Assembly: GCF_021869535.1 (NCBI RefSeq)
Contig: NW_026262701.1
Coordinates: 31,558,001 to 31,622,000 of the forward strand
Direction: 5' to 3'
DNA from: Mytilus californianus
Lineage: Eukaryota
Length of the DNA stretch: 64,000 nucleotides
Within the stretch, counting starts at the first letter, position 1; each line of letters starts with the position of its first letter. The translations under genes and the position numbers were made by a program. Below the pieces are notes generated by a model. That model was not told the origin of the DNA. It made no database searches and saw nothing but the letters and a program-made list of their open reading frames with translations. Below, one piece after another: positions 586-48,409 of this stretch.

Positions 586-717
586 ATGCCAATTAGAGTA
601 TATGTACCAATAGTTTCTCATGACAAAACTCTTGTTCCGGTATTGAAATATAATATAAACGGAAAGAAATGGCGAACAGGGCAGAGATTACCAGAAGTAC
701 AACTTGATGACGTTTAT
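586..717 (+). CDS. Copy 1 exon E (ZU5-1, MPIRVYVPIVSHD...KW)
   Basis: tatag| acceptor and |gtaag donor; 132 nt, same length as homologues at 29220-29351 and 55190-55321. Confidence 0.85.
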
Positions 718-3700
718 GTAAGTTAATCCATATTTCTCGGAATAGCGGGTGGTCTAGAATGCTATTTGTATATTGCAAAAGGTATATATGGAAAAAAGAA
801 TTATGGCATCAATATATAGAAGAGGCTGTCAATGTGTAACAGAACTGATGATCAAACCATCTGGAAATCTGTTAATCTCCTCCTGCTGTAATTTTTAGTT
901 GGTAAGATAAATATCAAATTCATCTTTTAATTCGAGCACAACACAGATATATGCATATCTCATTAGCAGGCTTATGACCAGAAAAGTAAATTTAACACTT
1001 GTCGCTTAACTTAAAACATCCCTTTAACCTATCATTCAAGCATTATAAATACTAATCAGCCAGCGAATGATTCCCAACAATGAATGAAAATTGACGTTTC
1101 AAGTAGAAAATATATACGGTTAAAAGAATAACAATTTCTCTTCAGGGTATCTCATTTGTTGGCGTAGAAATTCCGTTGACACAACTGAAACAACTGCAGT
1201 GTGTAGCAGTAGCTAGACATCCAAGAGATGAAACGGAGGTAGATGAAGGTGGTAAAGAGTTTGAACCAGAGGGTGATAGAAACATTAAACTAAAATTTCC
1301 TCCTGCAGCATTTCCTGGAATAACAACCGTTGCAACAGTGGTATTTTAAAGTTATCTTCAGATATATAAAAACAATCAGGCAAAAATGGCAGTTTTAATA
1401 CATTTAGGGATAACCTCTTTCTTTCTTGTTAGCAAGGCTATTTTTATTTCTAAATTCTGATATAATGTCTGCAAAATTTTCTATTTTATTCTATCGTTTG
1501 AACAATGTAAATATGCGCGCATAGGACGGACGTATCTTGTCTTTCTGGTCTTTTTTTTATCTCGCTCTTGAAAATGTCATTTTATCTTCAACTTATATTT
1601 TTTTGCATATTTGTTCCTTACATTCTAATAAATGATTACAGACTGTGCCTTGGACTCAAAATGACATCATAAATGCGTCGAAAAGACACAGAGAGTTGGA
1701 AAATATGAAAATAGCAGGTTCTTATATCAACATCTCGTGTGAAAATTCAACAAATGCAGATTCTGACCTTGAGATTTACAACCTTGGATGGGAAGGTAAG
1801 TCTTTAATTAATCCATTTAACACCAACAGTTAGAATTCAAATCATAGATTTCTTTTAAAAATTAACCACGAATGAGTGTCTGTTTAAATGAAATTGCTAT
1901 TCCATACTCTTTTTTTTTCAATAATTCTTATTGATTATTCGACAATAATCGACAGAGAATTAGTCTGTATGACGGGTCTATGTTGACGACGTTTTTGTAG
2001 ACATCTATCGCAAATAGACACTATTAAGTTTCACTGTGCTTTTATAGAGAGTTATCAAAAGTTTCATCAAGTGGATACACACCACTTTCGATTTAAGTAT
2101 TTTTTATTCGACACCGACGGTATTTATGATCACTTGTTCCAGAATCAAGCTTCATGTTAGCATGTTTTATCGTGTGATGAGAACTTGTTCACAGTTAAAC
2201 ATGTTTTCAAAATGTGCCTTCCTTGAATGAATTTACAGTGAATAAAAGTATTGGTAAAAGACATACCTTGAACCGCGAGACCCTGAGCAGATGTAGCAGG
2301 TGGATAGTTAACAACATGAATCCTGATGACATGGCTCTGCACTTAGATGATATGTTTGAGAGCGATTTTGCTGAAGAGCTAATGGTAGGCTGGTTTTGTT
2401 TCTTTTAAACAATTGTAGCAAAATGTTTTTAAATTGCGTAATCTTGATAATTTGAATAAATAAAGGCAACAGTAATATACCGCTGTTCAATAAATCGATA
2501 AAGCGAAAACAAATCCGGGTTACAAATTAAAACCGAGGGAAACACATTAACTATAAGAGGTAAACAACGGAACAACAGAAACACTGAACTGCAACAACAA
2601 CAAACGCCAACATACATAGAAACGCACTATTTGAAAACAACTGTAATATAACATTATCGTATTAAGATTAAGACGTTTCGATTTGGAAAAAAATATTTTA
2701 AATACCGGGTTTCAGTTTTTCGGTTAATTCTTTGTCAGTTTTATGCTCTCTGACATGTAGTAATTTCGGCTCTCTAAATCAATTGAAATTAGTTCTATCA
2801 AAACTTTTGATTTTTCAACCCTGTATATCACCATTCCCCATGTGAAATTAAAATATCGTCTAAAAGAAATAATCCACAATGCTTTTCAACATATAATGGT
2901 AGCATACGCTATACATTTATTACCTTGGGATACCATACGGCATATTTTGTTAATAGCAAACAAAAAGGTAAAACATGCTACACAGAGGAACAATTTTCCC
3001 CACCTTATTAGTAGCAATATACCAACTTCACCTGCATATGGGATATACATTTCTAACTCATTCGGTATTCAAGAGCTTGCAGCTGCTACTCAGACTTTAT
3101 AACACGTCACCAGTGTCTGAGCAAAAAGTTGATGAACCAGGGTAATGTCAAAGAACGTCTCGTCCTTTTTCAAAAAAAGTTCATCTGAAGATACCAAGAC
3201 CTTGTTGATAAATATTCTGTATTAACTTCACAAATAATACACGTTGGTCTTGAAGTAAAGATTATAGGTACTAACGTTGTTTATCATCTTAATTATGTGT
3301 TATAGTGTTCTTTTATTTGTCTTTGTAAATTATTACATTTACTGTTTAGTCTATTTTTGGTAATATCCATTTGATGTAGCTCGGTACTTATACGTCCCGT
3401 CATTGTGTTATTGTGCTATGATAAATTTTTGTCTTTCGTTTTCGTTTATATGCCTTTTTGTTTTTTTGTTTTTTGACATATTTGTTTGTTTTTATAGTGA
3501 TTAAGATTATAACACAATGTTAGCTGCTGTACCCCTATTTTTTACATTTTTACCTATTATGTCTGTTTGTTTTGTTCACACATTGTTGTCAATATAATGG
3601 AATTTTATACGACTGTCATACAAGTGAGAGGTTTAGCTAGCTATAAAACCAGGTTTAATCCACAGTTTTCTACATCAGAAAATGTCTGTACCAAGTCAAG

Positions 3701-6700
3701 AATATGACTATTGGTTTCCATTCGTTTGATGTCTTTGAGCTTTTGATTTTGCCATTTGATTAGGGACTTTCCGTTTTGAATTTTCCTCAGAGTTCGGTAT
3801 TTTTGTTATTTTACCTTTGACCTTAAGTCTGGTCATTCAATAGTATTTTAGAATCATGTGTCGTATAGACGGAAATTGGTATCATAATTGTTTACCACGA
3901 TTAACGATAGCAAGATTTTCTAATAGAAAAATTCATTATTATTCCTCTTAGAACCGATTTTGTACAATTTGTGTAAATACAGTTGCGTCTTGAAAGTTTG
4001 TTTTTATCTTCTATTGATTTAAGATTGTTACCTTTACAGACAAAAAATACACAAGGAGATAAGAATAGACACATTTTATATGAATTAATGGAATCAGATG
4101 ATGCCAGTATTGACACTTTCGTCGAAAATTTAAGTTCTTCACAACCAAATGTAGCAGACAAAATCATTGCTGTGAAGTCAAAAGTACAAAGTTCCAGAAA
4201 ATCCAAAGATTCAAAATACGATTTCAATTTTGCAAGTGACTTTGATCCAGGTAAACTAGCAGTTTTGACTGAGTATTTATTTTAACTAGTAGCGGGAAAT
4301 GGGAATATATCTAAAAAAAACTTTCAAATTGGACGATAATATCGAAAACGAATTTGAAATCGAACAGTACAATACGTACCAATTTAGTTAACAACAAATG
4401 CACCTAAGAAAAGCATGCAAATATAACACAAGACATATTGCCAAGAAGCTCGGATTTATAGCGTTAAAAGACACTCTGACCTAGTCGAGTGCAATTGGTT
4501 CATTCTTTTTAGTTGGTTTATTTTTGTAACGTCATGTTTAAATCAAAATGAATCTATGCTTAGTAAGCAGGTTTCTTTCCTAGGTTTACGTCAATTCAAC
4601 CTGAACAATTTATATTTTAACAAGTAGCGATTTCTTGATGAAAGGCTATTTTAATAAAAACAAATACACGGAAACGAAGAATTGACCCTGGGAAGAAATA
4701 AGTTTTACTATTAACTTTGAATAATTTCTAAACAGATTTCGAAAAGAAAGAGGGAATAGTTTATATGGTTTCCAAAGTCAGTGGCAAATCATGGGAAATA
4801 GCACCAATAGAAGAAACTGATGCTCATCCAAAAGCAAGATTCCTAAAACTTCCTGCTGGGAACAACAATTTTCAGTAAGTTGACACTTAATTAGAAACCT
4901 AATTCTAGACAATCACATTAGATAATAAATTTGGAACTTTCAATCCATATATACATTATCGATGATTTTATATTTATGTTTTATTTAGATTTATATTTTG
5001 CATACATCGCAACCCTGAAAAGCTGGGAAAAAGATGTTAACCACTTTGTACACACCAGATCTTTGATATGTATAACTTTGGCACAATCGAGTTTGGAAAT
5101 CTATTTTGTAGATTTTACATTTACAGATATTCGTATTTCTTTTTTCATTTGAAATGTATTATACTTTTAAAATTATTGAGGTGCTTATTAGTTTCAATAT
5201 TTAATAATTCAATACATGTATTTTCATCAATAAAATATTTTGCATTTATAGGGTACTGGGTCTGGTTGTTCCATTTGAGATGAAAGATGAAGTTATCTGT
5301 AAAACAGCTGAAATTCTAGAAAGTTTGAATTGTGTCACTAAGGTGTCACTGATATGTCGTCAAAAGCACGCAGATCCTCATGATGCTGTTATTCAGTGTG
5401 TCCGGACAGAAAATATAGCTGGTACTCTTCATCATTTGGATGCTTTAGGATATACAGATGGTCCACCGGAAAGCTCAGAGTTTGGGGTTGTTGATGGAGA
5501 AGAAATTGAAGTACAATACGAATCTAATTTGTATTTCGAGTATTATCAATATTCTACCTTGAAGATGAAATTTTACAGCAATCTTTCTGTCGAAAGATAT
5601 TCAGGAAATCTCCTAGTCCTTAACAAAGGCGACCAAGCCGAAGACGATAAATATCACGGACATTTTTCCTACAGTGTACTCCCTGGTCGGTTGTCCATTC
5701 CAAGGCAAGGAACATTTGTCTTATATGTGCCAAAGGTATGCATATCAGAAAATGTGAAACAAAATTCAGACAATATAAAACATAAACGAAACATACTTAT
5801 GTATATATATTCATGATTGAATATAAAACAACATGAACAATGTAAACAAAGTAAATGCACCGTACTATTTATAGTGTACCGTTCAGCGATCCTGCGAGAA
5901 TCACCAAGCTGACGTTATTCCTGTAATATACATTGTCGAACGTAATTTCTTCCAATGCATTGATTAATAGTTCATTAGTGATATTAAAACGGTAAAAGAA
6001 ACTCGACAATACATTCAGGGTAGGAAAATATTGTTCTAGTTCATTCTGAAATAGATGTTAACATGAGCGAATTGTTAAAACAACATAATGTATTTACAGC
6101 ACGTACATTTTTTTCTGACATTTTCTCAATATGTAACCATAAAGGACCAAAAGTATAGCCACATCTGCACAATAAATCGGAGCTATGCATGAAGGAGATA
6201 TATTCGTTAATTTCAAATAATTTCAACTGTAAATAACATACCAAAACACTAGAAGAGATGTATGATTAAACGAGAAAGACATGTAATAAATATAAAAAGA
6301 AGATGTGGTTTGATTGCCAATGAGACAACTCTCAACAATAGACCAAATGACACAGAAATTAACAACTATAGGTCACTGTACGGCCTTCAAAAATGAGCAA
6401 AGCCAATGCCGCATCGTCAGCTATAAAGGGCCTCGAAATGACAAATGTTTAACAATTCAATAAAGCATGTCTGTGCCATTTTATTCTTTAAAATACATTT
6501 TATTATCTTTTAACACATTTCCAGAAAGTTGGTAAAAGTTGGTAGATGTATTTAAGACAATGTGAATATGTACTCACTCTCTCTGTAAAGTATTTGATAG
6601 ATATGTAGAATATTTTGGATCATTTTTCACACAGGTATTGCGTTCATGCTTAGTTGGTATACTGTTCATGTATATATTATGTATGTTACAATACAGTAGT

Positions 6701-9694
6701 GTTTGTTTGTATCTGTACTATTTTTTTTTTAATTTAATCCAATTATAATCATTTTGTATGTTTTATAAAAAGATATCATAACCCAAAAGTGCATTTACTA
6801 TAAAGTAATTATTTTCAGCCTTTAGAAGAAAACGTCACCAACTTTCCTTATACATTGGGTGTGCCAGGTATGCTTGTCCCATATAACACAAAAAACTGTG
6901 ATAAAAAAGTGGAATACAATATCAAATCAACTCTAAAGGATAGATTTTGTATGCTACAAATAAATGGAAGTTTAATTACTGTGACTTTTATTACTTTTCT
7001 CTCTCTCTGACACCATAGATGCACAATATAATCAACAAGGGGGGCACAATACAAAGTTCCCGAAGGTCAGCAGATACTTATTTTTTTTTTAATTTCTCTG
7101 ATTGAGGAACAAAGGAAGTAAAGAAGACAGTTAGGAAAGATATACAGCCAATAGTTCAATATTGTGTTAGTTCAGTGTTCCCAGATTAGAAGCTTTTACA
7201 CGCAATGCTAAACAAAAGTAAAATTTTGTTATTAGTTTCAAAATATTGTTTCCATTATTTAAGTTTTCCACTAAAATATGACTTTCATGAATAGTACTTT
7301 ACACTGTGAAATGGCTTCCACTGGGTTCATGAACTGTATTATTTTTTTTTCCAAGAAAATAGTTCAATATAAAATTGAGAATGGAAATGGGGAATGTGTC
7401 AAAGAGACAACAACCCGACCACAGAACAGACAACAGCAGAAGGCCACCAATAGGTCTCCAATGCAGCGAGAAATTCCCGATGTTAATTTTCTAAACGTAC
7501 ATGTACATCCATCAGTTTTGTTTCCTTTTTTTATACGGATACATTTACATTTTATCTTTGAAGAATATTACATGTTTTTGGCTACGTCGGTGCCGTCTTA
7601 ATACAGAACACACGAACAGCAATAATCAGCGTGACACAGTTTTCTTTGTAAATACAAATTTTAAGTAATTTATAACGATTTCTTAAAATATTTCAGTCAA
7701 GGCATTGGCAAAGTTTATTGCTTGGCAAATTACTTGTACCAATTCTAATTCAACAAAATGGGTATGTCTTGGCAAAAATCTAACAGATGGGGACACACAG
7801 CTATATCATCAAATATTGGAAAATGTGAAAGAGCAACGGGATAATGCAGAAGAACGTGAACGTTGTGAATTGTACATTTTGTATTGGTCCAACCACCATG
7901 CACCAGATGTTACTGACAAGGTATAACGGAAACAAAAATACTTACTAAGAAACTAGTACCTCAGAAATGAAAGTGCAGAATGTTATTATATAATAAAGTG
8001 TATATGAAATGGATTTTTCAATATCAGGAGAGAGCTGTTTGATTTGTATGGGGGAGATATTAATGTGTCATTTGATATAATCTACATATTTACTGGCAAT
8101 ATCAACATGATCAACATTTGTTTTCTTTATGTGCTAGGTCAAATCTTAATTCATTTGGTTATTTGCTGTTCTTAACATTTTTGTTGATTGTATTTGATAT
8201 GTATTGCAAAAACCCGAGGGTTCCTGCTCTATCAACGACGTCCATCGAGTTGCTAATTCTAAAACCAAATAAGTGACACTCTGTCATTAGGAGTCTTAAT
8301 AAAGACTTTCTGTAATTTCGAAATGGTTTGAATGATGAGATGCAAGGAATGGTAAACGCCAATAAAAGTATACATGTATAATTAAATTCAAAAATTGCAA
8401 GCTTACTTAAGTACGACACGTCAGTTAAGGTGTCCTCCAAACTGGTTAGGATTATATTTTGATTATTCCTCAAATGCAACGTGTTGCTTACGTATGTTAT
8501 TTGTTTTTATTATAAAGATAGCGAAGATAATAGCTGCTCATCGTCATACACAGTTAGAAGCAGAAGCAAAGCAATTCATAAAACCTTTCATTCCAGGCAG
8601 AGGTAAAAACTAAATTGAAATAGTATTTATTTGAGTATCTTTAATTTAAATGAGTGTGCAGTTTGATCATGATTTTATAATGAAGTATGGGGACAATAGG
8701 TTTTTGTGGCAAATGAAGGCCCTGAATGGGCATTCTATAATTACCACTGAGCAAGCAACAACCAGTCAACATTAAGACACAACTTAAATCGTTTCAAAGA
8801 TTAATATCTAATTATTAACGTAACGCTCTGTTTAACGTCTTCCGTTTAACTTATATTTAGGCAACAGCAATTTATCGACGTTAAAAAAAGGGTTAAGAAG
8901 AGAAACCAAGGTAACAAGCAAAAATTGAAGGTGTCGCATGAACTCCAACAGGAGCGATACCGAATGCAGCAACAGGGTAAGCATCTCCTGTTATGCATGC
9001 ATCACCCGCTGGGCGAATCCACAATCAGTCGAAATGTTACAATAGAGAATAGGACACATTTTACGATTACATATATATATATATATATATTTGACGACTT
9101 TTCTGGTTTCTAAATTCGATATTGGTAAATGTGTTCTCTACAAGAAAATATATTATTAAAAGTCATTAGAAGCGCTTAGTTGGGTAAACTTGACATGGTT
9201 GAACAAAATAATACTCCCTTGCAGTCATTTAAACCAAAATAAACTATAACATGTATAACCATGAAATGTATATGTTGTTGGATTTAATTAACAATAAAAG
9301 TGTCTTTTAAATTAGTTAACAATGTTGTGAAGAACATTATGTGGGATAAAAATAATTCTTATTTTACATCAAATCATTGTAAAAATATGCTACTGCACGT
9401 TATATATATTTTTTAGGAATTTTATCAAATGATAACCTGGAAAAGATGGCTTATGTTTTAGCAAAGGATTGGGAAGTTTTTGCAAAGAAACTAGGGTTTT
9501 CGAGTGATGATATTAACAAAATAAAATCGAACCAACCTGGTGAAGTAAGACGTACACTAAGAGTGCTAGATCTCTGGCGGCTGTCAGATGGCGCTATTCA
9601 AAAGGGAACAGAGTTGGTAAAGAGTTTGCACCAAGCTGCAAGGGCAGCTCAATGTGGTGCAAAGTTACTAAGCATGATTTCTGAAGATCTATAA
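586..9694 (+). CDS. Copy 1: PIDD1/DTHD1-like ZU5-ZU5(CARD insert)-UPA-DD-DD gene, 5'-partial, 11 exons, about 698 aa in window
   Basis: Exons 586-717, 1146-1340, 1642-1795, 2239-2384, 4040-4250, 4736-4874, 5252-5735, 6819-6867, 7697-7920, 8518-8602, 9417-9694. All junctions are GT-AG, phases join into one open frame (2097 nt) ending in TAA, and homologous exons recur twice downstream. Confidence 0.9.
1146..1340 (+). CDS. Copy 1 exon F (end of ZU5-1, start of ZU5-2: GGKEFEPEGDRNIKLKFPPAAF)
   Basis: ZU5 N-terminal motif GG..(x)..v.l.FPP.AF; 195 nt, same as 58808-59002. Confidence 0.9.
1642..1795 (+). CDS. Copy 1 exon G (ZU5-2 core)
   Basis: TVPWTQNDIINASKRH...YNLGWE; ttacag| and |gtaag; 154 nt, same as 59922-60075. 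Confidence 0.9.
2239..2384 (+). CDS. Copy 1 exon H (CARD, first half)
   Basis: ETLSRCSRWIVNNMNPDDMALHLDDMFESDFAEELM matches the CARD helix 1-3 pattern; 146 nt, same as 60290-60435. Confidence 0.85.
2993..3815 (+). mobile_element. 5'-truncated Penelope-like retroelement (Naiad/Chlamys-type RT C-terminus plus tail) in the CARD intron
   Basis: With frameshifts reads PHL.SNIPTSPAYGIYISQLIR..RAC..YSDF..RHQCLSKKLMNQG..KERL. Confidence 0.75.
4040..4250 (+). CDS. Copy 1 exon I (CARD, second half, plus linker)
   Basis: TKNTQGDKNRHILYELMESDDASIDTFVENLSSSQPNVADKI matches the CARD helix 4-6 pattern (T..dk.r.lL..l......f..F...L...qp.lad.l). Confidence 0.85.
4736..4874 (+). CDS. Copy 1 exon J (C-terminal strands of ZU5-2)
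   Basis: DFEKKEGIVYMVSKVSGKSWEIAP...ARFLKLP; aacag| and |gtaag; homologue at 63882-64000. Confidence 0.85.
5252..5735 (+). CDS. Copy 1 exon K (UPA domain)
   Basis: LDALGYTDGPPESSEFGVVDGEEIEV...KFYSNL...YHGHFSY resembles the PIDD1 UPA pattern (GPEPSDTVEMFEGE..FYS..RGQVSF, recalled from memory). Confidence 0.85.
6819..6867 (+). CDS. Copy 1 exon L (49-nt linker)
   Basis: ttttcag|CCT...CCAG|gtatg; the phase 0 to 1 change is needed to join K to M. Confidence 0.7.
7697..7920 (+). CDS. Copy 1 exon M (death domain 1, helices 1-5)
   Basis: ALAKFIAWQI...KWVCLGKNL...ERCELYILYW has the DD pattern l..ia..l...W..L...L ... l..W. Confidence 0.8.
8518..8602 (+). CDS. Copy 1 exon N (end of DD1 and linker)
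   Basis: IAKIIAAHRHTQLEAEAKQFIKPFIPGR; 85 nt, same as 40605-40689. Confidence 0.8.
9417..9694 (+). CDS. Copy 1 exon O (death domain 2, terminal exon)
   Basis: LEKMAYVLAKDWEVFAKKLGFSSDDINKIK...LRVLDLW is a canonical death domain; TAA stop at 9692-9694. Confidence 0.92.
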
Positions 9695-27615: not shown

Positions 27616-28469
27616 TAAAATGTGTACCTGTAATATCATTTCATCCAATAGGGGCGACATTGATATTAAAAAAGTAGAACAAGTTCAGACAATGCAAAGA
27701 CTTGCAAAACAACAACAAGAACTGATGGAGTTCACAACAAAGACCACACAATTGGTTATGAAGATTGAAAGTAACGCAGCTCTGTTTCTATCTGATATAA
27801 CTGGGGTTAAAAGTCAAATGAAGCAATGATCTGATGGGTTAGAAACATTGGAAGAGAAAAACGAGAAATAAAAGAGACAGAAGAAAGGAAGAAAAGGGAA
27901 AAAGAATTAGCAGAGCAAACAAAAAGGAAACAGGAAGAACGGAAGGAAAGAGAACATGAAGAAGCAGAACGGCAAAAAAAAAAGAAAAGAAGAACGGATG
28001 AAAAATGAACAGAAAGAAGCAAAACAAACAAGCAGAACGGAAAAAAACAGGAAGAAGCAGAACGGAAGAAAAAAAGAACAGTAAGAAGTGATTCGGAAGA
28101 AAAAAGAACAAGAAGAATGGAAGAAAAAAAGAACAGGAAGATACAGAACGGAAGAAAAAAGAAAAGGAAGATACAGAACGGAAGAAAAAAGAACAAGAAA
28201 AAGCAGAACGGAAGAAAAAAAGAACAGGAAGAAGCAGAACGGAAGAAAAAAGAACAGGATGAAGCGGTAAGGAAAAAAAAAGAACAGGAAGAACGGAAGA
28301 AAAACGAACAGGAAGAACGGAAAAAAAGAACTTGAAGAACGAAAGAAAGAAGAAAATGAAGAAGCTGAAAAGCGAAAAAAAGAACAAGAGGGACGAGAAG
28401 CCGGGAAAAATCGCCGAAAACAAGAGGAAGAAAAGAAAATGAGGGATTGAAAAACTGGCTTCCCAATAT
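27616..28469 (+). pseudogene. Copy 2 exon C with expanded E/K/R minisatellite
   Basis: DIDIKKVEQVQTMQRLAKQQQELME aligns with 51629-52048; premature TGA at 27827-27829; frameshifts in A-runs; conserved AT|gt donor at 28470. Confidence 0.85.
27930..28400 (+). repeat. Purine-rich coding minisatellite (30-bp and 24-bp units, EQEEAERKKK)
   Basis: Repeated GAACAGGAAGAAGCAGAACGGAAGAAAAAA variants. Confidence 0.85.
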
Positions 28470-31400
28470 GTAAGTTCGCCTTATTTGCTTTCTCTTTCTG
28501 AAATATTTATGGTCATATAGCAGTTCATTTAAAATGTTCATTTAAACAGTTTCTAATATATAGCAATTCCTAATTCATTACATACAATATCATCAATTTG
28601 TATGAAGATAAAGATATATGACAACGAAAAAGCTTCTAATTGACAATAAAACATCGAATGACATAAACATATTGTTTTCAGATGTATACAAATTTATACA
28701 CAATATGTCAAGCTGTAAATATCACCGATTCTAGAAAATTCACTACGAAAACTATATATAATTGGTGATATACACATTTCGTCCATTTATTAAGATATCA
28801 CAATTAAAGACGAAACAAAGTCTGCCAGGAAATCTGCTGTGTTATTTTTACAATGCCTGATGGAACTCAGAACAGCGATTTTGCCAAAGCTATGACTCTG
28901 TTGAAGACCTCGATAAATGTTTGAAAACCTATGACGAAACGAAAACTTATATCCCCTGTTATCACAATCCAGCCACAGAAGAGCAAAGAGACTATGTTAT
29001 GCAATTAACATTGTGCAATTAAGATGTAACAATTCCGATTTTTGGTTGTTAGTCTTAACAAACATTTTTAATATTGACTGCATCGCAAAGATTTATATTG
29101 ATTAATTCCAATAGGTAAAATTATGATCAGTATTTCAATGCGTAAATTATAACATATTAATTACATATATAATGTTATAAATTTATGTACTGACAAATAA
29201 CATTTTGTTTACATTTTAGTTGCCAATGCGAGTGTATGTTCCAATAGTATCGCATTATGGTAACCTTTTACCAACACTGAAGTTCTCAATCAAAGGTCAG
29301 AAATGGAGATCAGGAAAATCACTTCCAGAAATTACACTGCCAAATGTACAGGTTAGTAAAATAAAGATTACTTGAAGTAGTTATAATAGTACATTAAAAA
29401 TAAATCCGCGCTTTGTTTATCATTTCAAATAACTTTTCGTTTATTAATTACCAGAATGTTTCTTTGTTTAATGTTGTTTTTGAAACTATGGTCATACATG
29501 TTATATTCAAGTGTAATTATGCGAAGAAATTGTAGTTAATTGATATAGGTAACCTTAAGGTATCTTACATTGTCACTGTAACATATTCTCTTGTTAGCTT
29601 CCAGCAATTGAACTGCAAAGATACTCACCATGGTCGATTTAAAGAACGATGTCAATCGAGATTTCGATCTCAGGATTGATTTAATCATTGACTTAATCTA
29701 GTCATGCATCTTCAATAAGAATAAGAAAAGTTAAAGAATACACGTAAAGATTTTTGACTCGACATCATTTTTACGTGTCAGGGAAGCTGATATTTTTCTA
29801 TTATATAACTGTTCCATCAAAGAAAGGAAAATGATAATAATAAGTAGTTGTTCTCAGTTTAAGGAAATCTTTACAACAGAACGTAATTGTTTAAAGTAAG
29901 ATCAATTAAACAGCAACAACACACAAAAAAACAAACATTTAGACATGAGCAAAATGTCTTCAACAAAAGAAAAATATCCTTAAGATTTGTCAAGATTTAA
30001 ATGAACTCGATACTAAACAACTATGAACAGATTTTACAGACACTAATAAAGATCTGCCCTAAACATTCATTTTTGTTAACGACAAAAGTATTAAGATCTC
30101 AAACTTCCCACTAACAGGAACATAATTGTTCACCTATATGTATTTGTTTTATTTTTTGCTACCCTTTTCTATTTATATTGGTCAGTGGATTAAGAAAATA
30201 TACACCTGTATTGTCAAATTGAACTAAATTAGCATGCAAGGTTAAGAATTAATGGTTTTATCTAATTACAGAAGATTTTCTTAAACCGTTACGTTGATCA
30301 ATAGAAATTATCTTACATAGAATATGAAAAAAGAATTTTTTTTTACCACATAGCGTAGTCATATCAATTACAAAAATTCTGAAATAACAAAAAAAAATTG
30401 GCCAATGACTATTTCATGTGATAAACTAAATATATTTTTGAAAATATTCCTTTCATATTGAGCTGCAATCGAAATGATAAAGTAACTCTTCATAATAAAA
30501 GAAACTAATAAAATATTTGCAAAGTGAACGTACTGATATTGTTCTAAATAGTAATTATGCGCTTTCTCTGTATTTTTTGCTCATTGAATTATCTCCACAG
30601 TAATTTTTATTTCGACTTTGAGAATGAACGGACTAGTCGGTTCCTCTGTTAAATTTTTTTTTAGTAATTTCTTTTAATATGAATATTTTGATATTAAGTT
30701 CAAAGGTTCATCAATGGTTAGGCTGTGAAAAGCAATTCTAACAAATCATTTTCTTACGTGCATTGTAATCTAATAAGTTAACCGACATTTTTACCAAAAT
30801 TTGGTACAGAGATATCATTTTGTGTAACTTATCAACCGTGTATGTGTTATCGCTGCAAATAATACTTTCCTAAACGACACTTCGTGAATGTCAGTTTACG
30901 CGACTTACCAAAAAGCAGATTTAGACACGTCAGGTGCATTATATCCCGTTACTCCCCTAGCAGCTGGTGACTAGTTATCATAGTATAAAACATTAAATAA
31001 TTTGTGTTCATTCCAGTTCAATAATACCCACTTCGTTAGCACTATTTGTGTTTGCGTTATCTCTCACTTTCAAAATCGCACATAATTTTTTTTTTTTTTT
31101 GGGGAAAAAGCTAAAGTGTATTATAATTGTGATACATATTTCTTCATGAAAAAAAAATTGTAGTTTTGATTGGAAGTAAATTGTACGGGTTATTGTTATG
31201 ATTATTTAGTATTATATTAATGTATGCAAATCAAATATATATATTTAAAGAAACTTGTGCTGGATGAAAATACATTTTTTTTCGATTTTTCAAGTCTCCA
31301 ATTTCATCACAGGAACTGGAGAATCAAACATTTGACGCCTCGTTAAACGGCAACTGAATTCACCGATAAACATATCAATTCCATAAATACATTTTAGATA

Positions 31401-31620
31401 ATTAGAAACGTTACTTAGATGACTGTTTTGTATTGTGGACATTAATTTGGAGAAATTAAATGAATTTAGAAATGTAATCAATAATATCAACAAAAGTATC
31501 CATTTCACTTTGGAATATAGCGATAGACAGATACACAATTACCGTTTAATGATACATACATATAATGATGGTATCCGTATTTTGCGTTTTATAACATTGT
31601 TGTTATAATTCTAAAACTAG

Positions 31621-31795
31621 GATGTTTGCTTTGTTGGAGTGGAAATGCCCATTAAGCAATTGGAGAACATGCAGTGTGTTGCTGTTGCAAGACATAAACG
31701 TCATGAAACTACAGTTGACGAGAGAGGAAAAGTTTTTGAACTAAAGATTGACAGCAATATGAAAGTCAAGTCGAAAAACTATTGTTGCAACAAAG
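31621..31795 (+). pseudogene. Copy 2 exon F with 20-nt deletion removing FPxxAFxG
   Basis: 175 nt versus 195 nt in copies 1 and 3. Confidence 0.85.
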
Positions 31796-34244
31796 GTATA
31801 TATTGTGAAAGCTATCTTACTAATATAACATGACAAAGTTGGGAAAGCAATGTTGCTGAAATGGAATATATATGTATGCATTATAAGAATATTGCAGCTG
31901 CACAATAACAATTTCGACAAAGCTACATATAAAAAAGATCAAACATAAGTATAAAAACGAGCATAAAAACAATGACAGTATAAGATATAAGTCATAGTTT
32001 AATCATATATTCAAAAAAAAGAGTTGGATAATACTATTGGGATATTCCAAAGGTATGAAAAGTTGTCGACTCATCTTCTCTATCGTCAATTAAGATAATT
32101 TTTAAAATAGTATTTTTTTCATAATTTTAGTAATGCCTTTCATACACCCCGTTCAACCAACGTTTACTTAGTTTAGCTTTATTTAGATAGAATTATGTAT
32201 GTATTGGAAGCTATGCTGCATTTAAACGTTTTAACTTCAAGATCTACAATGATTAAATACATAGATTATATGAAACATATCAATAAATGTAATGAATAGA
32301 CATTAGAGGCTGCGACAAATATTTTCTCACCTTTTTGGGGATTTCTAGAAATGTTTAACATTCGACAAAACTTTCAGTATGAGTGATCAAAAACATGAAA
32401 AAACACTACGGTTTTTGCAGTGTGAGGCCGTCACGACACTATGATAATTTTGACATTGTGAACATATATATCCGGACATCACATTAACCAAACTTTACAA
32501 TACTAATGAATTCAATGAAGAATTATGCCAGACAATGGGATAAACACGAAAATAGAGACGTGAATGTGTTAAGGCTGTGAGGTCGTTAATCCAAATAAAA
32601 TGATAGGTCTATGAACACACATGCTACATTCATCTTCAAAGACACAAACGTGGCTTTAAACTTCTGTTACCTGCATAACAAATATGGTGCTGTCCTCGTA
32701 TATAAAGCCCCGAATAACAGTATTTTTATGAGTACATCAAATTACATAAACTGATGGATAACGGAATAAGTATTGATTTTTCACTTTGGAATTCAACATA
32801 TACGCCAACGAGACTTATAAATAAGATAATTTTTAACAATCATAGGTCTGTTATATGTACCTTTGGAATTTGTATCAGAAATGAATACTAACTTGATCTT
32901 CATTCACTGTACTGGATATCAAAATTGCAAAGGTTGCCTTTGGTTTACTTTTACAAATTGTGACTTGGATGGAGAGTTGTCTCATTGGCACTCATACCAC
33001 ATCTTCTTATATCTATTACAAGCAAAGTTAAAGTGTAGGGTCTGTCAAGTGCCCTACAACACCGGGCCTCAGAGTTACTGTGAAAATCCCTTCTCTATAG
33101 TCGGTGTTGACCAGATGTTTGTCATGAAAAATAGGCTTCTCTACTAAATCAGATGTTGCTTATGTGAAATTCGAAAGATATGTAACAGTACATACAATCT
33201 AAGTATTATTCCTATTGCAATGGTATAAATATGTAGGCATCTGAACCGCGATGGTACTCCGTGTTGGTCACGCTAAAAAAGGTTAGACTCTGAAGTGTGT
33301 TTTTTATCATTTTGAAGTGCGGTGGTGGCATTGTGTCGCTATCTTGTTGATAGCTACGAGGAAGTGAGTTGGTGATAACGATGAAGTGTGATGGATTACA
33401 TAAACAACATTTTTACTATGTTTTTCACGTTCATTTGTCAATGTACAAGATAATTTTTTGTTAGAGGAGGCTTTTCAGGTTGCTACGTAAATCATCGAGA
33501 GTATGCAGGACGATCTCTCATTTAGTATGAAAGGACATACATAATATGAAATATTGTCTTATTTTGTGTTGCAAACACCGTTTAAAAAGATGAAACTTTA
33601 GTATAAGCAAAGTACTGACATATGATAATTAAACATATATCATTTTGTCATTTAATCCTAATTAGCATGGTAAACAGGCTAATTACAGGTAATCATTCTT
33701 TTAACGATTCGATTATTTCAATCATTCATATCATCGATAACAAAATGCCATAGATTTTTATTGATAACAATGAAATCAAATTTCATCTAAGTAATAAAAA
33801 ATCTACTTTTTAATATAATTACACATCTGCATGTAGATTTTTAGCTAGCTATCACGCGTCATATAGACCATAGCATATCAGCTAAAGGACCATCACACTC
33901 TGACGAAAACCATCGTCCTTCAGCATAACCATAATCCTACATTTCATTAAAAACAGCTAATTACCTGTTTTATATTGCCAAATCGATGTCAAGACTGATG
34001 AATACATGCAAACATATAAAAACTTCTATTATCGTGTATGTTATAGTTACCAAATTAAAAAGTGTTGGGAATGTATAGATACTGTGCTTTCGAGTGAAAT
34101 TTAGTCCATCCTATGGTGTATCTACACATAGCCAATCACTTTTTTTTTTTGGTAAATGACATGTGTCAAAGTTCACAACTGATATCACGTGATGAAAAGT
34201 ACTTTTCCCGCTGCATTATTAATCTGCGGGTTTCATTCGTCTGA

Positions 34245-35045
34245 AATGGCTGCAAAAATGGAGGTCTGTGACATTGACTTTTTAAACTTTTTCTACAACA
34301 GTAAACTTTTCGGGCTCAGAGGAGTGGACGATCATCGGAACTTCTGTCCGTGGACTTGTTCGAACTTGGAAATGATCAGACGGGAAGCTATATTTTATTC
34401 AAGGGCAGAGCCAACAAAACGTACTATGGTAAGTGTCATTTTTCTTACAATTTTGTAGTATTTGTGCTTTTATTGTGTATTTCAATTGGTTCTTTTGTGT
34501 ATTTGGGTCATTAACACTTGACTGACGGTTTTCAGAAAATCCAGGTGTCTTCGTCGAGGTCCGCGCTACAACAGGTGCTTCTTTTATGGAAAACAATAAG
34601 GTAAACACGGGTATATTGTGTCGTGTGACGGTGTGTATGCTTATTACATTTTACCCAATCCAGGCCAAATAAAATTGTTTTATATTTCAATAATCAGTTT
34701 TGTTCAATGTATGATTTTTATGTCACTGAATGTCAATACTTAATTTTTTTTCAGGTGGACTCAAATCAGTGGAACTTCAGTGCCCAAATCCTAAAACACT
34801 ACCTTCAAAACCCTGTACTTTTCAAGAAATATCACGGAACAGTATTTGAATATTGTACGTGATCTGAATGGGACAGCCATTTACAAGAGACCTCTAGATT
34901 AAGGACGTACATGTAAAGTTTGGTGAACAGTCAGTAGGCGTTTTCAAAGTATCTAATATCATGAAAACGGAAAATCGTGAACCATCAAATAGTGCTAGAG
35001 GAGGCTTTGGAAGTTTGTTGACTGGATGCATGTTCAATTCTAATA
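34245..35045 (+). pseudogene. Decayed unidentified intron-containing gene nested in the copy-2 F-G intron
   Basis: Donor GTAAGT at 34429, acceptor 34535/6, donor 34601, acceptor 34754/5; a frame is continuous across both introns but needs frameshifts elsewhere. Confidence 0.45.
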
Positions 35046-35914
35046 ATGGAAGTTAATTACAATGTATATGAGTGATTGATTCAGTATTTGTGGATTATGT
35101 TGAATGGTTTTGGTGTCTTTCATTCAAAGGAATGTTTTTATAATGGAATTATGTGCACCTTTTTTTTTGTAGTGAATTTGTTTGCATTATGGAATCATGT
35201 GCATCTTTTTTGGTAGGATTCGAGGATTTATATGTGTGTCGTTCAGTCTCACATTTTTTTTTAAAAATACTACAGTTATTAAAATTCATTGTTATACTTA
35301 TTATATGAAAAAGAAAGGATACGGGGTATTCACCAATGAGACAATTACCCAACACTTTACTTTTAGGGTTGAAAAATATTCCAGGAAAAAAAATGTGTTA
35401 CATTGTAGTTTCTGGCTAAAAGTGTAAGGTATCTAACATATACCACAGGGCCATTTTCAAGCAACTGGTAAACCAATCAGAGGGCAGACATGGAACTGTG
35501 GTGTATGTGTAGATACCCTCATACTTTTTCAACTGAAAATCAAACAAACTATGGTACATTTGCTGATAGTGATACACATAATTAACCATGAATGTAAGCG
35601 ACATATATTTATAGACATATATATTGTGTGTTGCATGTGTATAAAAGGAGATTTCCCAAGATAAACAACGTTAGATCGTTCATTCTTTGAAATCATCAGC
35701 TGATTTTGGTAAAGTTACTGTCACAGACGGAAACATTGTACAAAAACCATATAAACATGTTTGCTGTCCCTGTTATTTATTAAATTTCTTTTGAATGATA
35801 TAATTATTATTTCCTGAAGCTGCTTATTCATTTATTCTTGTGAGACAACGCTGGACAAAGGTATTTTGTACATCGAAAATTACGGATTGAAATCTAAAAA
35901 CTATTTTTGTCTTT

Positions 35915-36280
35915 CAGATTGGGAACAGTTATAACAACCGTTATGGAGAATCTGTGCGACAGATGACCACAAATGTAATCATATTGCCGTAGCCACAATT
36001 CCATCTTTCTCTCTTCGATCGCGACATTACCGAATCAGACTTATCATATGGTTTATACTTGCTTTATCAACACGTAGGGTGTCATATGGGGAGCATCTGA
36101 ATTCACGCCGGGTTTTTGTGAGATTCGTCTTGATCGGTTTTTAGTTTTATATGTAGTGTTTTGTGAACTTGTGAACTTGCTCGTCTTTTCGTCGTATTTC
36201 GGTTTTTTGGGGGGTTTTTTTTGCCATGGCATTGTCAGGTTTTCTTTGACTTTTGAATACCTTCTTAGTATCTTCCGCCT
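35915..36280 (+). mobile_element. Penelope-like 3' tail remnant
   Basis: RYGESV.QMTT-like ORF end plus tail; related pieces at 14700-14930, 26350-26680 and 62290-62520 (minus strand). Confidence 0.55.
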
Positions 36281-37859
36281 TTTTAACTTCTACTAACAAA
36301 ATGAATCCGATGATGCCATACAAGATTGATCTCAGTAACACAGATGCTTATAGCAGTATGATGGCATGTTTTATACAAAAGGGTAAGGTTGTCGGGAAAG
36401 CAAATTTAAGGTGTGGAAAGAATAATTTTTATTACTTTTTATGTGCATTTTATAAATTTTTTAAATTTGTTTGGACATTCAGATACAGTTCAACTAGTTT
36501 AAAATAAATACAAAATTAAATGAAAATCCGAAATTCTGACCGGCCCCTCTGCTTTAAAATGTAAAAACTATTGACAATATTATTATTTCGAACAAAATAA
36601 ATTTCACTGAAGTACAAGGAGTTTGCAGGATTCTTAATTTCATCTGTACATATTTTAGTAAAGGAGGGAGATTTTATAGGTGTAAAAACTCATAAAAGAT
36701 ACCAGGCTTATAATTTGGTACGCTAGACAGCGTTTCGTCTACACAAGGTTTATCCATGGCACTCGAATCAAAACAGTTAAAAGGCTTAATCAAAAGCAAA
36801 ATTAAATAGCATTGAAAACAAACAATTTCGAAAACTTATACAAAACGATTAAAGCTGTCTAATCCTTGTGGTAGGAATACATCAGTGTTTACAATAGTTC
36901 AACATTTAATAAACTGTAAGTTTAAAGGAAATAAGTATTTCAATGATGTTTCATGTAATAAACAAAACATGACGATGCTCTCAAGAACGAAGAGTTAAAC
37001 AGCAGATCCGTCGACCCAGTTGTTGTAAAAACTCCCCAAGGCTAGGCTAATAACTTGGTACGCCTGATGCGAGTTTCATCAAACAGAGGACTCATCAACG
37101 GGGTTCAAATTAAAATAATTGGAAGGTCAAATCAAGTCGATGCTAAAGTAAAACGAAAACCGAAAATTCCCAATAGTTGTGTCAACAACAGTTTAGGCTG
37201 TCTATGTCATGAGATAGAAAAACCTCATTGTTTCCAGTAATTTAACATTTCTCATATTAGTAACACAAACGAGCTGACTATTGGCTGGTGACATCGACCC
37301 AGTTGTTGTAAGAACTCATCAATGATACCAAAAGAGACGACAATATAAAAAATACTAGGAAATTGTAATTTACAGAAACGGCACTTTTATAGTACATCAT
37401 GAACTATTTTTCGTTGAGGTTTTTAACTGTGCAATGTACTAACAATTTGAGGGAAAATAATAATACGTTTCTTTTTATAACTCTCTTGTATATCAGCAGC
37501 TTCGTTATGTTTTAGGAAGATTTTCATATAAAAATTTGATAATTCATTTTCTAAGAACTACTTTATTACGCAAAACAACATTTTTGTTATAAGATCCATT
37601 TTTATTTTTGTATAATGCTTTGCATTGTATTTAATCAAACAATAATTGCTTAATCAAGTTAAATTTGTGTTGCTGAAAGCAGTTCCATGGACTCATGCCG
37701 ACATAAAAAATGCACCAAAGAAGCACAAGGAGTTGCAAAATATTAAAACAGCCTGTTCCTATAAATATTATAGATATATCATGCGAACATTCAACAAAGG
37801 CAGATTCAGATTCAGAGATGTATGATTTTGGGTGGGTTGGTAAGTTTTTTATGAATATA

Positions 37860-38053
37860 NNNNNNNNNNNNNNNNNNNNNNNNNNNNNNNNNNNNNNNNN
37901 NNNNNNNNNNNNNNNNNNNNNNNNNNNNNNNNNNNNNNNNNNNNNNNNNNNNNNNNNNNNNNNNNNNNNNNNNNNNNNNNNNNNNNNNNNNNNNNNNNNN
38001 NNNNNNNNNNNNNNNNNNNNNNNNNNNNNNNNNNNNNNNNNNNNNNNNNNNNN
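37860..38053. other. Assembly gap (194 N)
   Basis: Run of N; true size unknown. Confidence 1.
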
Positions 38054-40874
38054 ACTTAATCAAGTTATTTTTTTGTTGTTGAAGGCAGAAGGGGACAAGA
38101 ATTGTATGATCCTACGTCATTTGCATGATTCTGATTCAGATGGTGATTTCGATAAATTGTTAAACGGGTTGAAATCTGCCCAACCGAATGTGGCAAACAG
38201 AATTACTTCGGTTAAAAATCAACTCAAGTTGTCTAGAAAACAGAAAACACGGACGCCGAGGATAACTTTGCTAGTGACTTTGATCCAGATATGAAGATAT
38301 ATCAGTAGCAAAATCAGGAAGTTAATTAAATAAGCTCATGGTCAAGTTTTGTTCTATTATTCTACATACAAAATAGCATATTGTATATACAAAGTATTAA
38401 GCTTAAGCTTTTATGTTCACAAGAGGGATTGCAATCTATGTTTTAAAAATTAATTTGAAATTTAAGTCCCATATTGAATCTTGTGCACTGTATTACAAAA
38501 AGAAATTATTAAAAAAGTGTGCATCTTTTAAGACCGTATCAGGTATCCGGCTGAAGAACTAGCCCGTTCAGATTCATTTACAAACAGTGTGATTGCTATG
38601 TTATATTCAACATTTTGGTACTTATTGCTCATAAAAACACACTTCAGCAGTATTAAAATTTCTTTGTTATCTAAACTGATTGAATTATAGGAGAGGTTAG
38701 TACATTCAAACAAAAATGATTAGTTAACACTAAATCGTTGTGAAACGCATAAATATCTCAATTTCTTTAATTACTTTACCCCCACACAAATACGATACGT
38801 ATACACTGAGGATAGTGTTTTAAACCGTACATGAGACCATCTGTCCTTCAACAATTCCTTGTTCTCGCAATGAGAGTGTCTTAAGTTTTGTGAAATCCCC
38901 TTCAAAATTGAATGACGATTATCACTCATTTAAACGGACTGGCATGGCAATACAGATATTGTTTGACTCATATTTGCTGTTCTAAATTCGGAAATCATTT
39001 TGAATTCAGGAAAATATATTATCAGCCTCATGCACAACTATGATTCTTTGTTCGGATTAAGTTTTACTGTATGTCCTTTTTTGTTTAATTAGCTCTTCAA
39101 CGTGTGCATATGTTTTCTTTTTCGATTATTATAGCCTCCAGCCTCACTGCATAATTATTTATTGTCAAAATGCGCATATGATGCAGTAAAATTGTTACCG
39201 ATAACCAATGAACCTGTAATTAATGGCCATATTTTGCAAGGTAGCCTATACAGATATCCCCTATTTTTGTCGCCAAGATTGTATCTCCAAATTTCTTGTA
39301 CTAGCTTCAAATTTGTATGAAAGTTGCCTCTTGTCAAACTCTTGGATGTGTTCGACTCTAGGTTCATAAAAAGGGAACCATTGTTTAATAAAATAGTATA
39401 ACAACTACCGAACTCCAAAGTAATTTAAAAAAAGGGGGAAGTCCATAAAAATGGACAAAATCAAAAGTTAACAATCAACGGAACAACTTAAACACAACTG
39501 TTATATTTCTGACATGGAAAACGGGGGATTTGGGAAAATATTTGATTTCAATTATTGTCGCAAAAATATCATCCTCATAATTTAGCAAACCCCTTCAATA
39601 TTGCATATTGGTATACATATCCATTTAAGCTCTTATCGCCATATGGCTTGGCATCTTTAATTTTTAATCAGATCCTCGACAAATGTGTATGAAGGATTTC
39701 ATTGATTAAAAAAGTTCATATTACTTGTTATCCATAAAGCCAAGATTAGATTCCTTTCAATTTTGGTTGAAGATTTCTTCTCATCATATCATTGGATGAT
39801 TTGTAAAAACAGAATAAATTTGAAATGGAATTTCTCTTAGTATTTCATTTACAGAAGAACAAGAACCTAACTAGCAGTTCACTCACAAACTTATAGTTCA
39901 TTTCATTTCATTTCAGATCAGATCAATGACATATGAAAAATCTCATTAACTTATGTATATGGATATATATATAAAAGGAATATACCACACAGTCCAGTTC
40001 AAAAGAAGCGAAAAGAGGGAAATATTATGAATTAACAGTAGACAGAAATTGCTTAGTCTATTTTTTGGGGGCAGGGATGCCCACACAATCACTGAAAAAA
40101 TATATAAATACCAGTTGTAAATCTTCATATTCTGTACAAGAATGTTTGTAAGTTTGGTTGAGTTATGTCAATCTGTTTTCAAGGAGTTGCGAATTAAACG
40201 AGAGTGACACGAAGACGCAATTTTTTTTTAATATTTCGGATTTAAGTGTAGGGAGAGACGAAATATCATATTGTAAGAGATACGATGGAGCATGTTTTGC
40301 TAATGATATTCTTTAGAGATGAAGCTAACGCGATCTTTCTATTCACTGATATACAAAACGTCAGGTTATATTCCTGTGAAGTAATAAAGTATTTATGTCT
40401 TGACGTCACAATTCTAAAATCAGAGAAAAGCAGGAAAATTGGACTTCATTATCAAATTTTGACCAGTTGAATATAAATCAAGTGATTAACACATTAATTA
40501 GAAAAATATAGTCATGACTCAAAGATGCATTTAGATGATAGAGATTGCCTCTGAAGGTGAATGTTGTGTATGCTACAATTATTCAGTATGTATGATATTT
40601 TTAGGTTGAAAAGATAATAACGTCTCATCATGATGCAAAATTGGAATTAGAAGCGCATCAGTTCATCAAACCATACCTGCCTGGAAAAGGTATAAGTATA
40701 ACTTGATGAACATGGCCGTTATGTAATATCATCGTGTTATGCAATAAACTTTACTACTTTGTATTTTTTAATAGGGATCTAATCTGTGTTGGTAATTAAT
40801 TACACTAATCATTCTGTCGTATACATGTTTAAATATCCGCCATCAAATACCAAAGAAAAGCCTATAACGTTCTA

Positions 40875-41501
40875 ACGTCAGAGTACCCAAATTGCACCGA
40901 GTACCCAAATTTCACCTATTCAGCAAAAATAGCAGCGGGAATCTTACAAGTTTCCCTTGAGACTAAACAATTTGTATTTTCATGATTTGACATTATACAC
41001 GTCTTTCAACATAGGTAGGCTATATTTGAATATACACAAAACGTTCACAGTATCTTTCAATAGATGATGTATTCACGAGAAAAAGTAAAATCTACGGAAC
41101 GTCGCCATGGTCCACAAATAGTCATCCTTTAAAAATGGGCAAATAAAATATGTTACAAGCATCCATTTCTTTAAATATGAAAAGTAAACATGGACTACTG
41201 TCAAATTGTTCTAAATATTTGAAGAAATAAAACAAAACATCTGTTATTCGATTTTTAAGGATGTGAATTTAAGCATGGATGCAATTTGTGTACTCCTCAT
41301 TACAGAGTCATGGGTCGTTTGGAGGTTGGTTCAAACCCATTTTTCTATGATTCAAGATGGATTCAAAATTAAATTAGTGTAACTATATAGTAAATAAGGA
41401 TACATCTACAAAATAAACACAGAATGGAAACTTTTGTCTGGATCATAAATAAACGTAGGTGAAAAAAAGTCAAAATAGGTGCAATTTGGGTACCCTCACG
41501 T
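40875..41501. mobile_element. MITE with ~25-bp TIRs (Tc1/mariner-pogo-like)
   Basis: ACGTCAGAGTACCCAAATTGCACC matches the reverse complement of GGTGCAATTTGGGTACCCTCACGT; TA-like flanks. Confidence 0.7.
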
Positions 41502-41869
41502 AATATGATAAACAAAAGAGGCATTAAAGTCGAAAGCAACTTATGTTTACAACTTTTTAAACGCTCAATGACTTAATTCACTGTGTTTAAAATACTGAAG
41601 TGTTTTGTTTTTTATTAAATATGTATGGACTTTAAGGCTATAGTCGACAGATAGTCTTTGTAATTACCAATAACATATGTTGTTATAAATCAAAATATGG
41701 TATTATCTTAATATTATTTTATGCTATTTCCAACGACGTAACAGCATAATACACATTGAAATGACAATATAATGATCAATTTTTTAACTCGGTTTTCATA
41801 CAAATATAATCATAGTAGAAGGTATCTTTTTATTTTTCACTATGAACGTATTTTTTAATGAATTTGTTG

Positions 41870-42150
41870 GAATATTTTCCAACGATACCTTAGAGAGAAT
41901 GTCATTTGCAATAGCTGGTGAGTGGGAATCTATGGCGAAGAGACTTGGTTTTACCAATGATGAAATAAATCAAATCAAAGATAGTCAACCGGGAGCAGTC
42001 AGACAGACACTAAAAATGTTAGATTTATGGCGACTGTCAGATAGCGCGATAGCCTCAGGAACAGATCTTGTGAAAACTTTCCATGAAACAGCAAAATCAG
42101 CGCAGTGTGGAGCAAAATTGCTAACCTGTATCTCTAAACATGCAAACTGA
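41870..42150 (+). pseudogene. Copy 2 exon O (death domain 2)
   Basis: Open frame homologous to 9417-9694, but preceded by ...GTTG instead of ...AG. Confidence 0.88.
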
Positions 42151-48138: not shown

Positions 48139-48409
48139 ATGGTTGACATCGAGGCATTACACTTATTACGTCAGCGAAAAGCGGCGCTAACAAAATTACC
48201 AAACCCAGCCAACCCAAACATATCATTTGAGAAATATGAAAAAGCCGTATCCAGAACGATGACGAGGACACATACAGAAATTGAAAAAGTATCAAAATAT
48301 GCCAAAGAGATCTTAGAAGAACTCGAGAATGTCAGAGAAGTGGTTAAAAACTGCAGCGTCAAAATTGGTGAACAATTGCAAGTGTTTATGAAAAGGAACA
48401 TGTTAAAAA
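48139..48409 (+). CDS. Copy 3 exon A (start ATG; predicted helical/coiled-coil segment)
   Basis: MVDIEALHLLRQRK...EIEKVSKYAKEILEELENVREVVKN; |gtacgt donor, phase 1 fits exon B. No homologue in the window to confirm it. Confidence 0.65.

Follow-up and report, generated by a model that had tools for sequence, protein, structure and literature searches.

Several described protein families combine ZU5 and UPA domains with death-fold domains. In the PIDDosome (PIDD1-RAIDD-caspase-2), PIDD1 carries leucine-rich repeats (LRRs) and a ZU5-ZU5-UPA core with one death domain (DD), and the CARD is supplied through RAIDD. In NLRP1 and CARD8 the CARD is carried by the ZU5-UPA protein itself, at the C-terminus after the UPA (FIIND-CARD), and the UPA promotes CARD filament formation (PMC7794386). 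CARD8, NLRP1 and PIDD undergo autocleavage at an SF/S or HF/S motif, between a buried Phe and the Ser that follows it, and this Ser is required (PMC3210808). Ankyrins and UNC5 are uncleaved, SH3BP4 and MACC1 possess an SH3 domain, one ZU5 and tandem DDs, and DTHD1 (human Q6ZMT9) is poorly characterised. Here we describe LOC127700211 of the mussel Mytilus californianus, a gene whose product is predicted to join a coiled coil, a first ZU5 domain (ZU5-1), a second ZU5 domain (ZU5-2) with a CARD nested within it, a UPA and two DDs (DD1 and DD2) in a single chain. Its last 11 exons, amounting to the 3' two-thirds of the gene, lie in a stretch of 64,000 nucleotides (contig NW_026262701.1, positions 31,558,001 to 31,622,000; hereafter the window).

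The exons were resolved by reading the stop-free stretches of the + strand between positions 586 and 9694 against the DNA. All 11 have AG...GT borders, and once spliced they form a single open frame of 698 codons closed by a TAA stop. Across 698/698 residues the translation matches positions 182-879 of XP_052059590.1 ('uncharacterized protein LOC127700211 isoform X3', hereafter P0052) with 100% identity, and this identical database protein was adopted as the reference for residue numbers. The 11 in-frame exons put forward in a preliminary description of this DNA are therefore those of the RefSeq model. That description, made without searches, knew of no described protein with the ZU5-ZU5(CARD)-UPA-DD-DD layout. 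No published account of such a layout was found in the literature on ZU5, CARD, death domains and bivalves or Mytilus; the gene itself, however, is already annotated, as an uncharacterised RefSeq model with paralogues.

Structural relatives and the missing autocleavage Ser

An AlphaFold2 model of P0052 was built from a 19-sequence family alignment, with a predicted local distance difference test score (pLDDT) of 83.3 and a predicted template modelling score (pTM) of 0.63. In the model a long N-terminal helix (residues 1-103), corresponding to a KE-rich coiled coil, precedes two beta domains (110-249 and 253-336), a helical bundle (352-444) held between two low-confidence linkers, a return to beta strands (468-513), a mixed domain (519-667) and two six-helix bundles (683-783 and 792-878). 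The model thus presents two ZU5 domains, a UPA and a death domain within one chain, in the order of the ankyrin supramodule. Foldseek comparison with the PDB placed the ZU5-ZU5-UPA-DD structure of ankyrin-B (4d8o) first (E 7e-17), followed by ankyrin ZU5A-ZU5B pairs and UNC5b, and in VIA alignments 4d8o extended across residues 107-669 with a Z score of 14.9. A single ankyrin ZU5 (3f59) aligned to residues 251..513, showing ZU5-2 to be a single sandwich into which a helical segment is inserted.

Among Swiss-Prot structures, the best match was human DTHD1 (E 2.3e-26), with residues 107-777 of P0052 aligned to DTHD1 166-761, an interval comprising ZU5-ZU5-UPA and a post-UPA death domain that corresponds to DD1. 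PIDD1 was next (E about 1e-21 to 4e-22), then ankyrins, SH3BP4/MACC1 (query residues 252-876, E about 1e-8) and UNC5, and DTHD1 and PIDD clusters were also the nearest in an ESM Atlas shape search. The likeness to PIDD and DTHD1 proposed from the sequence was therefore recovered, with the ankyrin-B tandem as the best match in the PDB. SH3BP4 and MACC1, cited in the preliminary description for their tandem DDs, likewise match P0052 across ZU5-UPA-DD-DD. Taken together, these comparisons support a core of the DTHD1/PIDD/ankyrin type (ZU5-ZU5-UPA-DD) in the modelled structure.

Each of these relatives also differs from the mussel protein. Nothing in DTHD1 aligned to the nested CARD or to DD2, and identity is only 13%. 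The supramodules of ankyrin-B, -G and -R (4d8o, 3ud1, 6m3q), which are the best match of known structure, have one DD and no CARD, while the mussel protein has neither ANK repeats nor evidence of spectrin binding. SH3BP4 and MACC1 are without a CARD, and their TM scores are low (0.14). PIDD1 shares the core, and the logic by which a DD assembly gathers CARDs would match; the mussel protein, in contrast, has a coiled coil in place of LRRs, no HFS motifs, a CARD in cis and a second DD. An assignment as a PIDD1 orthologue was accordingly rejected, given that Pfam returned no LRR match and neither junction holds an HFS motif.

The two junctions at which cleavage would be expected were examined directly. 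In P0052 the residue after the junction Phe is Val at the end of ZU5-1 ('ISF-V') and Gln at the end of ZU5-2 ('NNF-Q'), with no Ser, Thr or Cys at either position. Across the family the first site holds V/I/A and the second Q/K/D/E/V, and Ser appears in one paralogue only. Because the nucleophile Ser is missing, the family is predicted to be uncleaved, as are ankyrins and UNC5, and autoproteolysis in the manner of PIDD or NLRP1 was rejected (PMC3210808). A proteolysis-activated sensor comparable to NLRP1/CARD8 or PIDD, in which the ZU5 domains would cleave themselves and a signalling fragment would be released once the N-terminal one is lost, is on this evidence highly improbable. It would account for a ZU5-UPA and a CARD appearing together, which is the vocabulary of FIIND-CARD proteins and a known precedent for a CARD carried by ZU5-UPA. 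It would also fit the alignment of the rat NLRP1 FIIND to the mussel UPA (Z 9) and the FIIND-CARD clusters that neighbour the CARD segment in an ESM Atlas feature search (score about 0.7, a lead only). Yet apart from the replacement of the required Ser, the CARD of P0052 is N-terminal to the would-be site, so that a released UPA-DD-DD fragment would lose it. Classification as a FIIND-CARD protein was set aside on related grounds, namely a CARD within ZU5-2 where NLRP1 and CARD8 have theirs after the UPA, two DDs following the UPA, the missing Ser on which SF/S autoproteolysis depends, and no Pfam FIIND match.

The nested CARD and the two death domains

The helical insert of ZU5-2 most closely resembles a CARD. 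In VIA alignments, CARD chains aligned only to residues 350-438 of P0052, while DD chains went instead to residues 787-879. The Apaf-1 CARD (1cy5) aligned to the former interval with a Z score of 10.8 and a root-mean-square deviation (rmsd) of 2.1 Å over 87/92 residues, the CARD disk 5wvc with Z 10.9 and the RIG-I CARD with Z 10.0; overall, Apaf-1 CARDs gave rmsd values of 2.1-2.4 Å over 87-88 residues. In the model, helix 1 of the insert is broken (352-359 and 361-367) and is followed by five more helical elements. A broken first helix is a hallmark of CARDs. At the level of sequence, the Pfam CARD match in P0052 spans profile positions 2-82 of 85, and CARD is the commonest Pfam match among family segments (6/15, best E 5.7e-6), being found at the same position in 4/5 scallop relatives (E 1e-4 to 0.025, 15-22.5 bits). 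A search of the PDB with the family profile was led by the CARDs of CED-3, ICEBERG, CARD8 and RAIDD (E 0.02-0.11). A scallop-only profile retrieved the Apaf-1 CARD alone among CARDs, with an E value of about 0.2 and a rank below that of a designed helical protein, and comparison of the CARD with DD2 by hhalign was not significant, the 'W..L...L' stretch of helix 2 alone being aligned. On balance, the modelled structure supports residues 350-444 as a CARD in a surface loop of ZU5-2.

The low-confidence linker after the CARD contains an acidic motif, 'FASDFDPDF', which straddles the border of exons 5 and 6 (4226-4250 and 4736-4745). The motif is nearly invariant in Mytilus paralogues at least 46% identical overall, is kept as 'SDFDPDF' in P0010 (about 36%), and is missing from P0057 and P0007, the paralogues that diverge the most. 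A role as a short linear motif or as a site for a protease is possible.

DD2 was the sole domain called above threshold by Pfam, both in single exons and in P0052, where the Death profile (PF00531) scored 37.1 bits against exon 11 and 33 bits against the protein (cut-off 22.6), in agreement with the C-terminal death domain originally proposed. The DD chains of AnkG, FADD, PIDD and RIPK1 align to it at Z 10-12, including the AnkG DD at Z 12.4 (rmsd 2.1 Å) and the PIDD DD (2of5_H) at Z 11.3.

For DD1, the evidence from structure and from sequence diverges. Folded alone, the segment formed a six-helix bundle (pLDDT 86.8, pTM 0.82). Its top 12 Foldseek matches were all DDs (probability 0.41-0.96), although with weak E values (0.4-1.7), and nearly all of the top 50 among 48,161 chains in an unbiased VIA search were death folds, led by the DDs of FADD (Z 10.4), PIDD (2of5_H, Z 8.7) and AnkG (Z 8.4). 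By contrast, Pfam Death had no match in 13/13 family segments, the DD1 family profile found no DD among PDB sequences, and hhalign of DD1 against DD2 gave a probability of 0.5%, which is not significant, with only the helix 2 'W..L...L' stretch aligned. The first DD named in the preliminary description (its exons M-N) was thus borne out by structure and left without signal in sequence profiles. We consider the death fold of DD1 to be supported by the models, and its placement as a DD rather than a PYD or CARD to be only moderately secure. DD1, a divergent domain directly after the UPA, is the one to which DTHD1 and UNC5 align with their DDs, and it thereby represents the native DD of the supramodule, with DD2 as an extra, canonical one. 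The full ZU5-ZU5(CARD)-UPA-DD-DD layout is in this way supported, mostly by predicted structure (AlphaFold2, Foldseek and VIA).

Exons, transcripts and tandem copies

All 11 exons are on the + strand, and the gene begins upstream of the window, where a further 181 to 302 N-terminal residues are encoded depending on the isoform (X1 to X3). Exon 1 in the window (586-717, residues 182-225) is an internal exon encoding late ZU5-1 strands, with an AG acceptor at 584-585 and a GTAAGT donor; given this acceptor and the residues encoded upstream, the ATG at 586 lies within the coding sequence and is not a start. The window therefore holds only the C-terminal strands of ZU5-1, so that of the two ZU5-like repeats read from these exons, ZU5-2 is entire and ZU5-1 is partial. 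Exon 2 (1146-1340, residues 226-290) completes ZU5-1, contains the junction 'GISFVGVEI' and provides the first strands of ZU5-2 (model strands 228-292). Exon 3 (1642-1795, residues 291-341) encodes the first part of ZU5-2, as placed by RNA joints, model strands and the 3f59 alignment, and ends in phase 1. The CARD is divided between exon 4 (2239-2384, residues 342-390), with the first half and its broken helix, and exon 5 (4040-4250, residues 391-460), with the second half and the acidic linker, again ending in phase 1. The beta-sandwich of ZU5-2 resumes in exon 6 (4736-4874, residues 461-506; strands 468-499), and exon 7 (5252-5735, residues 507-668) contributes its last strand, the junction 'NNNFQVLGL' and the entire UPA, the latter located by the 4d8o alignment. 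A short exon 8 (6819-6867, residues 669-684), placed by reading frame and by identity to P0052, links the UPA to DD1, of which helices 1-4 are encoded by exon 9 (7697-7920, residues 685-759) and helices 5-6 by exon 10 (8518-8602, residues 760-787), according to the AlphaFold2 model and structure searches. DD2 is encoded by exon 11 (9417-9694 including the stop, residues 788-879).

Four RNA runs were mapped onto positions 1100-5800. Assembled contigs from three of the runs (1668, 2055 and 3201 nucleotides) contained the joints 1340|1642, 1795|2239, 2384|4040, 4250|4736 and 4874|5252, all GT..AG, and a loose contig end at 1146 reads into the 3' end of exon 1. Exons 1-7 are therefore joined in transcripts as modelled, and since the contigs carry both CARD exons, the CARD is included in the dominant transcript. 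RNA contig depth at 2356-3925, in intron 4, exceeded that of the exons by factors of hundreds to tens of thousands, and variant letters and loose ends were numerous there, which points to repeated elements abundant in transcripts elsewhere and not to expression of the intron.

Both introns flanking the CARD exons are in phase 1, making exons 4 and 5 a frame-neutral cassette whose skipping would keep the frame and restore an uninterrupted ZU5-2. A predicted isoform of precisely this form is annotated in M. galloprovincialis (LOC143080263 isoform X3, XP_076112118.1, hereafter P0063), in which the equivalents of P0052 residues 341 and 461 are joined and exactly residues 342-460 are absent. Isoform X2 of the same gene starts within the CARD.

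LOC127700211 is one member of a tandemly duplicated family that occurs in mussels and scallops. The largest exon, exon 7, was queried against 1.84 billion representative proteins and returned 46 relatives, the best of them 58% identical; a word-indexed search with the best full-length relative then recovered a group of Mytilus proteins. Mytilus species carry the CARD insert, as do the scallops Pecten, Mizuhopecten, Ylistrum and Argopecten. Homologues in the unionid Sinanodonta keep DD1 and DD2 with the CARD insert absent, and a Lingula relative has a ZU5 and two DDs. Conservation of the CARD is equal to that of the other domains (89-91% in orthologues, about 56% in paralogues).

Two further copies, B and C, follow LOC127700211 (gene A) within the window on the same strand. 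Copy B, at about 27.6-42.1 kb (27647-42147, +), retains the coiled-coil and ZU5 exons. Its equivalents of exons 3-5 (37664-38290) are contiguous without introns and have small frame shifts around a run of N (37860-38053), and equivalents of exons 6-9, encoding the end of ZU5-2, the UPA and the start of DD1, were not found before the exons for the end of DD1 and DD2 (40605-40694 and 41869-42147). The appearance of copy B suggests either a pseudogene that was rearranged or partly retro-processed, or faulty assembly across the gap. Copy C (48130-64000, +) follows the same exon plan as gene A, including a phase 1-1 CARD cassette (about 60290-60435 and 61100-61316), and is cut by the end of the window; an in-frame TAA (63977-63979) in its exon 6 equivalent, where relatives have Lys, may mark it as a pseudogene or truncated allele. 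With copies B and C apparently damaged, gene A stands as the intact copy in a tandem array undergoing decay. The longest open reading frame of the window (27807-28541, minus strand, 244 amino acids, no Pfam match) lies opposite the KE-rich coiled-coil exon of copy B, which it overlaps, and is for this reason probably an artefact, arising antisense to coding sequence of low complexity. No tRNA-derived elements were found in the window.

The state of the neighbouring copies raises the question of whether gene A is itself an evolutionary by-product, that is, a recent and rapidly evolving duplicate in which the CARD and DD1 would be degenerate structural fillers without partners. Beyond the damaged copies, the lack of sequence likeness between DD1 and any known DD would agree with such an origin. 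Nevertheless, the frame of gene A is intact, three RNA runs show its transcription and correct splicing, and its CARD and DD1 are 82-97% conserved among Mytilus orthologues and retained in scallops, such that we regard this explanation as very unlikely.

Candidate roles in signalling

Based on the modelled architecture, we cautiously lean towards P0052 being an uncleaved, self-associating cytosolic adaptor that uses homotypic CARD and DD contacts, a function we consider marginally probable. Copies of the protein would be gathered by the coiled coil and possibly also by the UPA, DD2 would bind death-domain partners, and the clustered CARDs would bind a CARD partner, with caspase-2-type initiator caspases the most interesting candidates. 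Skipping of the phase 1-1 cassette would generate a CARD-less isoform, a possible decoy. We infer from the architecture the self-association, every binding partner and any part that the protein may play in immunity or cell death, and direct recruitment of caspases is plausibly one of several outputs that such an adaptor might have.

A number of observations weigh against this adaptor function or the domain assignments beneath it. The insert was proposed as a CARD from sequence, and while structure agrees (Apaf-1 above), the Pfam CARD profile (PF00619) scores 14.6-15.8 bits on P0052 (E 0.014-0.034), below the gathering score of 23.9. Neither Pfam ZU5 (PF00791) nor UPA matched P0052 or its pieces at E values up to 10, and ZU5 was matched only in the distant Lingula relative P0036. 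With ZU5, UPA and DD1 lacking a Pfam match and the CARD below threshold, the domain calls depend on AlphaFold2 models from shallow alignments (13-19 sequences), and Z scores of about 10 are not decisive by themselves for helical bundles. A CARD held inside a ZU5 loop could also be sterically unable to form filaments. Regarding the CARD-less form, the isoform is one automatic gene model from another species, M. galloprovincialis, and the assembled RNA contigs of M. californianus, which drop rare forms, showed no joint between exons 3 and 6, the raw-read run having no depth on the exons. Finally, as a CRADD homologue has been reported in bivalves, a built-in CARD would be unnecessary to reach caspase-2.

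In a more specific proposal, the family would serve pteriomorph bivalves as a single-chain, PIDDosome-like platform that activates CARD caspases of the caspase-2 type. Oligomerisation would come from the coiled coil and the DDs, the CARD inside ZU5-2 would itself act as the nucleus for caspase CARDs, with no RAIDD or CRADD in between, and alternative splicing of the CARD cassette would toggle between active and decoy forms. A 2024 survey reported that molluscs, annelids and brachiopods have lost Apaf-1 and found no PIDD in lophotrochozoans, leaving CRADD as the sole candidate activator (PMC11463336), and the CARD caspases of bivalves are all caspase-2-like, with two-exon CARDs (PMC7836458). 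In this setting the functional idea of the preliminary description, a PIDD and a RAIDD combined in one chain that could recruit a CARD caspase, is a plausible and reasonable hypothesis. We view the full platform, with its splicing switch, as conceivable and rather doubtful.

Possible, though still on the unlikely side, is a role in immune or NF-kB-type signalling, in which the protein would be a hub or regulator and no caspase platform at all, and would wire or damp innate immune pathways. Its CARD partners might then be CRADD or BCL10-like, RLR/MAVS-like or NLR-like proteins, and its DD partners MyD88, IRAK, FADD or receptor DDs. The architecture would speak for a hub as much as for an adaptor in general, and tandem duplication specific to one lineage, with some copies in decay, is a typical pattern for immune gene families; in sessile marine animals, moreover, expanded sets of death-fold adaptors whose architectures are shuffled have been documented (PMC8195603). 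Conversely, the best matches to the CARD are apoptosome-type (Apaf-1 and CED-3) rather than BCL10 or MAVS, a distinction that is weak either way, and nothing separates an immune hub from a caspase-recruiting role.

As Pfam calls one of the six domains of P0052, architecture surveys based on Pfam miss most of this protein. The CARD cassette would be a natural case of a death-fold domain put into the loop of another domain by means of frame-neutral exons. Should the protein be an immune adaptor, it would add to the shuffled death-fold architectures of sessile marine animals. For the switching-on of CARD initiator caspases in molluscs, this mussel and scallop protein provides a concrete, clonable candidate platform.

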